From assembly GCA_039096225.1 (NCBI GenBank), contig JBBPEB010000013.1, forward strand, positions 992,001-1,056,000: DNA of 64,000 nucleotides. The letters run 5' to 3'. The first letter of the stretch is position 1. Every line of letters starts with the position of its first letter. Below are positions 41,078-44,099 of the stretch, in pieces. The notes beneath the pieces were generated by a model that was not told the origin of the DNA, made no database searches, and saw nothing but the letters and a program-made list of their open reading frames with translations. The stretch comes from Blastocystis sp. Blastoise (taxonomy: Eukaryota > Protista > Bigyra: Opalinata). Both the position numbers and the translations under genes were made by a program.

Positions 41078-42421
41078 ATGTCTAGCTTAACGTTACATAT
41101 AAGTAAAGTACCTGGAAATGTAACCACAACTATTACTGCTGAGTTGTCTGATGATGTCTCAGTTATTCGTGGTATTCTTGCAAATAATCAAAATGTAGAA
41201 CCAAGTCAAATTGTTATTATTTGTAATGGTGTTAACTTAAAGGATGGATATACTGTAAAAGATTATGATCTTGGAATAAAATCGAATTTGCGTTATGTTG
41301 TTAGGACAGGTCCTAAGCCAAAACCTGAAGCTCCTGGTAATAAGATCAATTTATCCTTCTTTCTTTATGAAGGTCATAATTACAATTTAACAGTTCCTTT
41401 ACATATTTATTGGGGTGAAGTAAAGAAGATGCTAGAAGTATTTATAAAATGATTATTTTATCAAAATAGAATGAATTATATAAAATTATTTTTTTATTCA
41501 TAGGAAAAGACTAAGATGCCTGCAAGTGAACTTCGTTTAATTCATGCTCAAGCAGAATTAATGGATGATGTTCGTGTTATTGAATCTAATGTCATGGATG
41601 CTTCTAAAATTTTCTGTGTCTTAAAACCTGTATGTTTTTCTTTTTTTGTTTTTTTTTTTATTTAATTTTTTTTTGTTTAATTTTATTTAATTTTTTTTTG
41701 TTTAATTTTATTTAACTTTTTTTATTAATTAATATAGTTAACTAAAAATTAATGTTATCAATATATTATATACATATATCGCTTATTTTTTTTAAAGTGT
41801 TATGAGATATTATATATCATTATAATTATCTATAGAATACTTCTTCTCATTTAGATAAGGTTATTGATGAGAATTCTTTAAAGTGTACCTGCAGATATTG
41901 TGAAACTCAAGGTGCTAAATTAGCTGTTCGTCCTTTCTGTTCTTCTTGCAAAGGTGAATGTGTTCTTTATGATGCTCCTGGCCTAGTTATTGGTACCACA
42001 AAATGGAGAGACTTACTTTCCTTACGAGGGGTCTGTATTAACGAAGGATGCAAAAACTTTAATAACTCTCAAAATGTATGTATATTCTACATATTTTTTT
42101 ATTATATATGTTTTATATTATATATATATATATATATATGTTTTATATTATAAATATTTATATATTATATATTTTTTATTATATATAATATCATTTTATA
42201 GTTATCCTTTGGTATTATGTGTGAAGATTGCCCTACTGCTATTCATGTATTAAGAAAGGTATTTTCTATACATTATATGATATATATATATATTTAAAAC
42301 TATTATTTTATTTTCTATATAGAGACTTGCTACTATTGAAGCAGGATCTACAGAAGATACTTTATTAAAATCCTTAAATGATTTATATAGTTATGCTCAT
42401 TTGAATGGTGCTTTAGAATAA
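41078..42421 (+). CDS. Ubl-Ubl-RING0 protein: two ubiquitin-like domains plus a parkin RING0-like zinc finger
   Basis: Exons 41078-41437, 41504-41629, 41836-42075, 42202-42258, 42323-42421, all phase 0 GT-AG; Ubl motifs and CxxC/CxxC/Cx4C/CxxC pattern. Confidence 0.8.
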
Positions 42422-43084: not shown

Positions 43085-44099
43085 ATGGCTATTCGTATAT
43101 ATTATAAACATGCCGTATCTATATGTATATAGGTGTTCAATATGAAGGAAGTAACGATATTGGTGTTTTTTCGAAATTAACCAATTCTTATTGTCTTGTC
43201 TGTCAAGCTGGAAGTGAAAACTTCTATGGTGCTTTTGAAGCTGAACTTGCTGACCATATACCTGTTGTACATACATCTATCGCTGGTTGTAAATTTGTTG
43301 GTCGTGTTGTTGCTGGTATTCTTTTCATTATATTCATCTCTATATGACTATTTATTAATATAGGTAACAAAAATGGTTTATTAGTACCTAATTCTACAAC
43401 AGGTATTTTATTAAAAGTTCTCATTTTATGAACAATATATATATATATAGATAATGAGTTACGTCATCTTAGAAATGCTTTACCAGATAATGTAGTTGTT
43501 CAAAGAATTGATGAAAGACTGTCTTCATTAGGTAATTTAATTGCTTGTAATGATCATGTCGCTTTATTACATACTGATCTTGATAAAGTATTTTTTTTAA
43601 ATATAATAGATTATTCATTTTTTTTTATATATATATTTTATTCAATGAAATTAATAAATTATTCATTATAATATAAATATATAATTTCATAAAATACTAA
43701 TAATTTGATTAATGTATATAAAATATACTATAAGAAACTGAAGAAATTATTAGTGATGTTTTAGGTGTTGAATGTTTCAGACAATCTGTTGCAGGAAATG
43801 CTTTAGTTGGTAGTTATTGTGTCTTTACTAATCAAGGAGGTCTTGTCCATCCTAATACTTCTGTTGCTGAAAAAGAAGAATTAGCTTCTTTATTACAAGT
43901 TCCTCTTGTTCCTGGTACTGTCAATAGAGGTAGTGATGTTATTGGAGCTGGTCTCGTTGCTAATGATTGGACTGCTTTCTGTGGTTTTGATACTACTGCT
44001 ACTGAAATCTCCGTTATCTCTGAAATCTTTAAATTGAATGATAGTAATACTAATATGTTAGAATCTGTTAAATCTTATTTATTTGAAGCTAATGCTTAA
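43085..44099 (+). CDS. EIF6: Eukaryotic translation initiation factor 6
   Basis: [71 protein letters not shown]; four introns, the fourth non-canonical. Confidence 0.98.

Follow-up and report, generated by a model that had tools for sequence, protein, structure and literature searches.

A Small Stramenopile Family of Ubl Proteins with a Predicted RING0-Like Domain and No RBR Ligase Module, Present in Two Copies in Blastocystis

The Gene and Its Surroundings

The window, a stretch of 64,000 nucleotides from Blastocystis sp. Blastoise with a G+C content of 23%, is located on contig 16 of the 33.3-Mb assembly and carries, at 41078–42421 of the forward strand, a gene of five exons with GT-AG introns throughout, all of them in phase 0, and the stop codon TAA (Table 1). 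An earlier note on this DNA had placed a gene here that becomes readable only after splicing, and this proved correct: the translation of each exon is identical to the corresponding segment of P0001, the 293-residue hypothetical protein WA158_003952 of the same organism in the NCBI database, which was recovered in the search with exon 3. Because of this identity the public annotation agrees with the five-exon reading. The full-length sequence used in the analyses is that of the database record, the exons themselves having been searched singly.

Splicing and stop of the gene are backed indirectly, namely by the canonical splice sites, by continuous homologs, and by words from a polyA metatranscriptome. 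The homologs in question come from intron-poor and transcript-like contigs and read through the positions of the splice junctions uninterrupted; in the polyA metatranscriptome run, 0.55 of the sampled words were found for a stretch that is 49% exon. Within intron 3, the places at 42137–42192 are AT/TA-rich and of low complexity. The next gene downstream begins ≈ 700 bp past the stop codon, and the translation of its first open reading frame reads like translation initiation factor eIF6.

Table 1. Coordinates of the five-exon gene (positions in the window) and of other loci of the Blastocystis genome discussed in the text.
Feature	Position	Strand	Residues	Remarks
Exon 1	41078..41437	+	1–120	Translation identical to P0001 1–120; Ubl1 (≈ residues 4–76, Ser69), 11-residue Pro/Lys linker, first half of Ubl2; donor GTATTT
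Intron 1	41438..41503	+		GT-AG, phase 0; splits Ubl2
Exon 2	41504..41629	+	121–162	Second half of Ubl2 with Ile44 equivalent and Ser154; exon residues 1–42 on PF00240 profile positions 30–71
Intron 2	41630..41835	+		GT-AG, phase 0
Exon 3	41836..42075	+	163–242	Most of the putative RING0-like zinc domain; C181, C184, C197, C200, C229, C234 (six of the eight Cys ligands), R194, W219
Intron 3	42076..42201	+		GT-AG, phase 0; AT/TA-rich
Exon 4	42202..42258	+	243–261	Identical to P0001 243–261; hydrophobic strand, C249 and C252
Intron 4	42259..42322	+		GT-AG, phase 0
Exon 5	42323..42421	+	262–293, TAA	C-terminal strand, helix (model 107–119), aromatic Tyr-Ala-His motif
Next gene downstream	≈ 43123 (43123–43347 onward)	+
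Paralog P0006 (L002)	G000:C4:1656535-1659642	−	298 aa	Ubl-Ubl-RING0-like-tail plan
RBR open frame L004	C1:382408-385554
RBR open frame L005	C10:41831-44977
Intron-rich RBR gene (L008/L025)	G000:C33:294000-302000	−

The Two Ubiquitin-Like Domains

The N-terminal part of the protein comprises two ubiquitin-like domains (Ubl1 and Ubl2). With exon 1 alone, PF00240 matches residues 12–76 at 27.7 bits, compared with a cut-off of 25.4, and a second match covers residues 99–162, spanning intron 1; over the whole protein the two stretches reach 55.1 bits, which passes the cut-off of the family. Neither Ubl carries a C-terminal Gly-Gly, and for that reason both have to be regarded, as judged from their sequence, as non-conjugatable.

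Among the sequences of the PDB, Ubl1 is closest to ubiquitin itself; the matches of Ubl2 are weak and include UBL4A. A particular affinity of the Ubls to parkin was considered and rejected, ubiquitin being nearest and the parkin Ubl appearing at E 0.38 among many other matches; a parkin-specific signal is absent from these domains. By the coordinates of the Pfam profile, Ser69 and Ser154 fall on the column of ubiquitin Ser65, and the serine reported earlier for this position in both Ubls is thereby located. Among the 18 family members that carry this column in Ubl2, 14 have Ser or Thr there, and the Cafeteria group has Gly or Asp. A serine at this place is frequent in Ubls and proves little. 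The predicted complex of Ubl1 with the segment Ubl2-RING0-tail received a score of 0.00, which counts neither for nor against an interaction.

The Cysteine Domain and the C-Terminal Region

The Ubls are followed by a domain with eight cysteine residues, seven of which (C181, C184, C197, C200, C229, C234, C249) are invariant across 20 homologs, with C252 nearly so. The residues R194 and W219 are likewise nearly invariant, and Gly188, Glu203, and Leu222 belong to the invariant or nearly invariant positions of the family, too. Since the eight cysteines together with R194 and W219 are kept across the 20 homologs, this is a conserved domain and not a chance arrangement. The eight putative ligands form four pairs, C181/C184, C197/C200, C229/C234, and C249/C252, with a spacing nearly identical to that in parkin RING0. 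The parkin ligands, which include Cys150, Cys166, Cys169, Cys196, Cys201, Cys212, and His215, are matched by the offsets of the alignment, with C181 on Cys150, C197/C200 on Cys166/Cys169, C229/C234 on Cys196/Cys201, and C249/C252 on Cys212/His215. These offsets agree with the structural alignment described below (model 8–99 on parkin 142–226), the last ligand being Cys in the gene of the window and His in parkin. The spacing within the last pair is 2 residues in both parkin and the gene of the window, in contrast to 8–11 residues in most members of the family.

Apart from the ligands, Trp219 occupies the position of parkin Trp183, and Arg194, at −3 from the third cysteine, that of Arg163. The earlier statement that all eight Zn-ligand positions, the Trp, and the equivalent of R163 align with parkin RING0 is thus in accord with the spacing. 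In parkin, this unit, the UPD (residues 142–227), coordinates zinc by loops 1 and 4 and by loops 2 and 3; a pocket of Phe146, Pro180, Trp183, Phe208, and Phe210 accommodates Phe463 of the RING2 tail, and Lys161, Arg163, and Lys211 hold a sulphate ion (PMC3730226). Counted from the ligands, the family is hydrophobic at the position of Phe146, and hydrophobic or aromatic at those of Phe208 and Phe210. When the phosphate pocket is mapped in the same manner, by spacing to the ligands, the Arg is kept in at least 90% of the members, and the positions at −5 and immediately before the seventh cysteine are mostly non-basic. The equivalents of K161 and K211 are hence not kept, as had been noticed before.

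The protein ends 41 residues past C252, and its homologs finish at the same conserved C-terminal motif. Pfam gave no IBR or RING match in the protein, no Cys-rich open reading frame lies between the stop codon and the next gene at ≈ 43123, and the nearest IBR match on the contig is ≈ 336 kb distant. A parkin-type RING1-IBR-RING2 with its catalytic cysteine, the lack of which the earlier note had pointed out, was accordingly not found behind the cysteine domain. As a whole, the earlier observation is confirmed.

The Family and Its Distribution

When exon 3 was compared exhaustively by HMMER with 1.84 billion representative proteins, 20 of them matched with E ≤ 0.001, corresponding to a family of ≈ 20 representative clusters in this collection. 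Word-indexed homolog searches contributed no more than one diatom homolog and one mispredicted fragment, and left the taxonomy no wider. The named members are the Blastocystis paralog P0006, P0028 of Cafeteria roenbergensis/burkhardae (334 aa), and P0039 of the diatom Stephanopyxis turris (365 aa); the remaining ones originate from metagenome or transcriptome contigs. It is a small stramenopile family, the full-length members of which share a plan of one or two Ubls, the eight-Cys domain, a strand, a helix, and an aromatic Tyr-Ala-His motif near the C-terminus. In members with two Ubls, the first Ubl is tethered by a variable linker of low complexity. No family member contains an RBR (RING1-IBR-RING2) module, the chain ending soon after the C-terminal motif, and among the hits there was no stramenopile protein that joins the Cys domain to an RBR. 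The link to MRO quality control that the earlier note had drawn is not upheld: the family has members in a diatom and in Cafeteria, which is aerobic, so that nothing marks it as an adaptation to MROs.

According to a profile search of the genome, the family consists of two genes only in Blastocystis. The paralog P0006 has three intron positions in common with the gene of the window, including intron 1 in Ubl2; an additional intron interrupts its zinc domain, and intron 4, the last one, is absent. At the position of the conserved Trp, P0006 has a Phe.

In two strains of Cafeteria roenbergensis, the proteins P0027 and P0030 (467 aa) are annotated as a fusion in which the Ubl-Ubl-RING0-like gene is joined to a Wbp11/ELF5-like gene upstream of it. 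A third Cafeteria strain has two separate genes instead, P0029 and P0028, which code for 159 and 334 residues. The 467-residue fusion is probably an artefact of the gene models.

Sequence Searches

The Pfam model of parkin RING0, PF17976, had been proposed earlier as a means to verify the assignment, and it did not recognize the family: it has no match with E ≤ 10 on exon 3, and none with E ≤ 1 on any of the 20 members (curated cut-off 25 bits). None was obtained in the six frames of the genome either, which is weak evidence, as the same search was also silent in all control genomes. Outside the ligands, the identity to parkin is low. Along these lines, neither phmmer with exon 3 nor the family profile reached parkin among the sequences of the PDB; the zinc knuckles of DnaJ/Mas5 and of anti-TRAP, which came up in these searches, were dismissed as chance matches. 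Pfam gave a single recurrent signal, namely weak matches to a HypA-type zinc ribbon in 11 of the 20 members, in addition to other generic ribbon families. A language-model feature search in the ESM Atlas yielded no usable match. Since sequence profiles do not link the family to parkin, the proposed homology rests on predicted structure.

Predicted Structure of the Cysteine Domain

Two AlphaFold2 models were obtained, model 1 for residues 166–293 of P0001 (20-sequence alignment; pLDDT 88.4, pTM 0.81), and model 2 for residues 234–365 of the diatom protein P0039 (pLDDT 87.9); both derive from essentially one shallow alignment of 20–21 sequences, and parkin structures were part of the AlphaFold2 training. 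In the Foldseek search of model 1 against the PDB, ranks 1–15 are all taken by parkin, with a best E of 0.016 and a probability of 1.0. VIA-align superimposes residues 8–99 of the model on parkin 142–226 with Z 5.5–6.4 and an rmsd of 2.5–2.8 Å over ≈ 81 residues, at an identity of 16–22%; on the aligner's own scale, Z ≈ 6 is middling. In a scan of 48,161 representative chains, independent of Foldseek, the top five are again all parkin (Z 5.8–4.0), followed by the next fold at Z 3.1, and no more than 16 chains attain Z 2. In the ESM Atlas, a search by shape put two parkin clusters first, with TM 0.61 and 0.59 over 101–103 residues, the next one having 0.43; in the 103-residue alignment, the C-terminal strand and helix align past RING0 into parkin. 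For model 2, the wide scan gave parkin as the top five (Z 5.6–3.8; next fold Z 2.3), and all Foldseek matches listed, down to rank 27, are parkin. The C-terminal helix (residues 107–119 of model 1, with pLDDT 88–95 there) is modelled beside the zinc domain, with high confidence in both models.

The comparison with parkin by AlphaFold and Foldseek, suggested in the earlier note, therefore ends with parkin first in every search for the two models, and the elongated two-zinc fold of parkin 142–227 is found in both predictions. The superposition implies that zinc would be coordinated as in parkin, by loops 1 and 4 and by loops 2 and 3. The Atlas itself contains a single-sequence ESMFold model of the protein; this model is of poor quality (pTM 0.33) and has generic zinc ribbons as neighbours.

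It could be argued that the resemblance is due to convergence, an independent double zinc ribbon or hairpin having come to look like RING0 in what would be a generic Ubl-plus-zinc-finger adaptor with no link to parkin. Such an origin would explain why parkin is unreached by sequence profiles and why 11 of the 20 members show weak matches to the HypA-type and other ribbons; the generic zinc ribbons around the ESMFold model point in the same direction, and Z ≈ 6 is not decisive. However, parkin is the sole outstanding fold in four structure searches with two models, ≈ 81 of the ≈ 85 RING0 residues being aligned, and the four ligand pairs follow each other in the same order and with the same spacing, with Trp and Arg at the positions of Trp183 and Arg163. 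The order of the domains, with the Ubl at the N-terminus, is also that of parkin. Taken together, these data make convergence rather unlikely. A RING0-like fold of the Cys domain is likely on the strength of the models, and for common descent with parkin the probability is somewhat lower.

The architecture proposed in the earlier note, Ubl-Ubl-RING0-like without RBR, is consistent with the Pfam matches of the Ubls and with a predicted fold that corresponds to parkin RING0. In essence, predicted structure supports the core interpretation of a Ubl-Ubl-RING0-like protein that lacks a ligase part, but sequence statistics do not; the earlier interpretation as a whole is partly supported.

Comparison with Parkin and Other Ubiquitin-System Proteins

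The authors who described the UPD found nothing like its structure in the PDB and nothing like its sequence in the human genome (PMC3730226). Parkin has been described as an animal-specific subfamily of the RBR ligases (PMC2904391), in contrast to the Ubl-RING0-like family, which belongs to stramenopiles, and literature searches brought up no description of a RING0-like domain outside parkin. On the basis of the models, RING0 is probably not exclusive to the animal protein. Both proteins carry a Ubl N-terminal to a RING0-type domain, but in the Blastocystis protein the Ubl is duplicated, and a C-terminal helix and an aromatic motif, both peculiar to the family, stand in place of RING1-IBR-RING2 with the catalytic cysteine. 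Furthermore, PF17976, the profile of the parkin domain, is blind to the family.

Shuttle factors of the Rad23/Dsk2 type and UBL4A likewise combine a non-conjugatable N-terminal Ubl with a separate binding module in the absence of any enzymatic domain. They differ from the Blastocystis protein, in which known partner domains such as UBA or STI1 are missing, and whose binding module would be a RING0-type zinc domain instead; a role as a shuttle is suggested by analogy only. The RBR E3 ligases encoded in the same genome are likewise zinc proteins rich in Cys that belong to the ubiquitin system, and they are possible partners. Unlike these, the protein of the window has no IBR or RING2 match, and the family profile matches none of them.

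RBR Ligases of the Genome and the Relation to Parkin

A search of the genome for RBR ligases devoid of Ubl and RING0, as envisaged earlier, identified at least eight loci with an IBR match, none of which has a Ubl or a RING0 of the family type. Among them are four compact single-exon genes and three long open reading frames; contig 15 carries a further gene, which is Ariadne-like, and contig 33 an RBR gene rich in introns.

The four single-exon genes (L006, L007, L010, and L011 on contigs C4, C34, C13, and C31, respectively) code for ≈ 380 residues each. By Pfam, L006 has the arrangement RING1-IBR-coiled coil-RING2 with a C-terminal ZZ finger; L007 and L010 match IBR only and L011 has no Pfam match, all three being closely similar to L006. 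To judge from their sequences, the four seem to stem from a single RBR type that expanded within this lineage. Of the three long open frames, L004 and L005 are identical over the 751 residues read, which means either a very recent segmental duplication or one locus assembled twice. The gene on contig 33 has introns with long runs of poly-TAT and poly-CTT style, and its exons 1 and 2 add Cys knuckles in front of RING1. When it was examined exon by exon for likeness to parkin, IBR alone was significant, and the match of the RING2 exon to parkin has E 0.77. Its N-terminal Cys exon was rejected as a RING0-like domain of the family type (hhalign probability 0.9%).

It is conceivable that parkin exists here in two components, the Ubl-Ubl-RING0 protein acting in trans on a separate RBR by docking on its RING2 or releasing it, with the gene on contig 33 as a candidate; control might be exerted by phosphorylation of the serines equivalent to Ser65. 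The genome with its IBR loci that carry neither Ubl nor family-type RING0 would offer possible partners, and among the PDB matches listed for the RING2 exon of the contig 33 gene, parkin is the only RBR ligase, at the non-significant E just mentioned. The predominance of Ser or Thr in the Ser65 column of Ubl2 (14 of 18 members) would also suit this arrangement. It is countered by the Pfam model of parkin RING1, which remains sub-threshold in the genome (best E 0.07) and finds nothing in the contig 33 gene, by the other exons of that gene, which match IBR only or nothing, and by the comparison of the family profile with its N-terminal Cys exon. Moreover, the equivalents of Lys161 and Lys211 are missing, and in the stramenopile Ectocarpus PINK1 is listed as not identified (PMC3097184). 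A two-component parkin is therefore quite improbable. The link to PINK1 presumed in the earlier note suffers from the same shortcoming, two of the three residues of the phosphate pocket not being kept.

Alternatively, the protein may be a relic: an ancestral stramenopile Ubl-RING0-RBR protein would have lost its RBR and duplicated its Ubl, taking on a new or reduced role. The domain order is indeed that of the N-terminal half of parkin, and the strand and helix that align beyond RING0 in the 103-residue match look as if they were the remnant of a RING1 contact. Against such a history stand the description of parkin as animal-specific (PMC2904391) and the lack, among the hits, of any stramenopile protein with Cys domain and RBR; the direction of evolution is not readable from the present data. 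A relic of a full parkin thus seems very improbable. The opposite course of events, in which a free-standing stramenopile Ubl-RING0 predates parkin, parkin arose by its fusion with an RBR, and the module still works in trans in Blastocystis with a parkin-like RBR ligase devoid of a Ubl, as a parkin system of two genes outside animals, is likewise a long shot.

Proposed Function and Significance

On balance, we lean towards a non-catalytic adaptor or regulator of the ubiquitin system, built on a RING0-like docking platform, and probably a distant homolog of the Ubl-RING0 half of parkin. By analogy with parkin, the RING0-like domain would serve as a platform for protein docking. That this platform is kept can be inferred from the most conserved residues other than the ligands, which lie at the positions of Trp183 and Arg163. 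The conserved aromatic segment at the C-terminus most likely packs on the platform in cis. The Ubls would recruit readers of ubiquitin-like folds, for example proteasome receptors or E3s, and may also dock back onto the platform of their own protein as tethered ligands. An adaptor or regulatory role, in place of ligase activity, would follow from this.

RING0, or UPD, has so far been treated as the private domain of parkin. If the assignment is true, the regulatory platform formed by RING0 can exist and function alone, with the ligase absent, and the family would provide a natural minimal system for what RING0 binds. The origin of the N-terminal half of parkin would then become a question in its own right, and Blastocystis gains an unannotated component of its ubiquitin system, in two copies.
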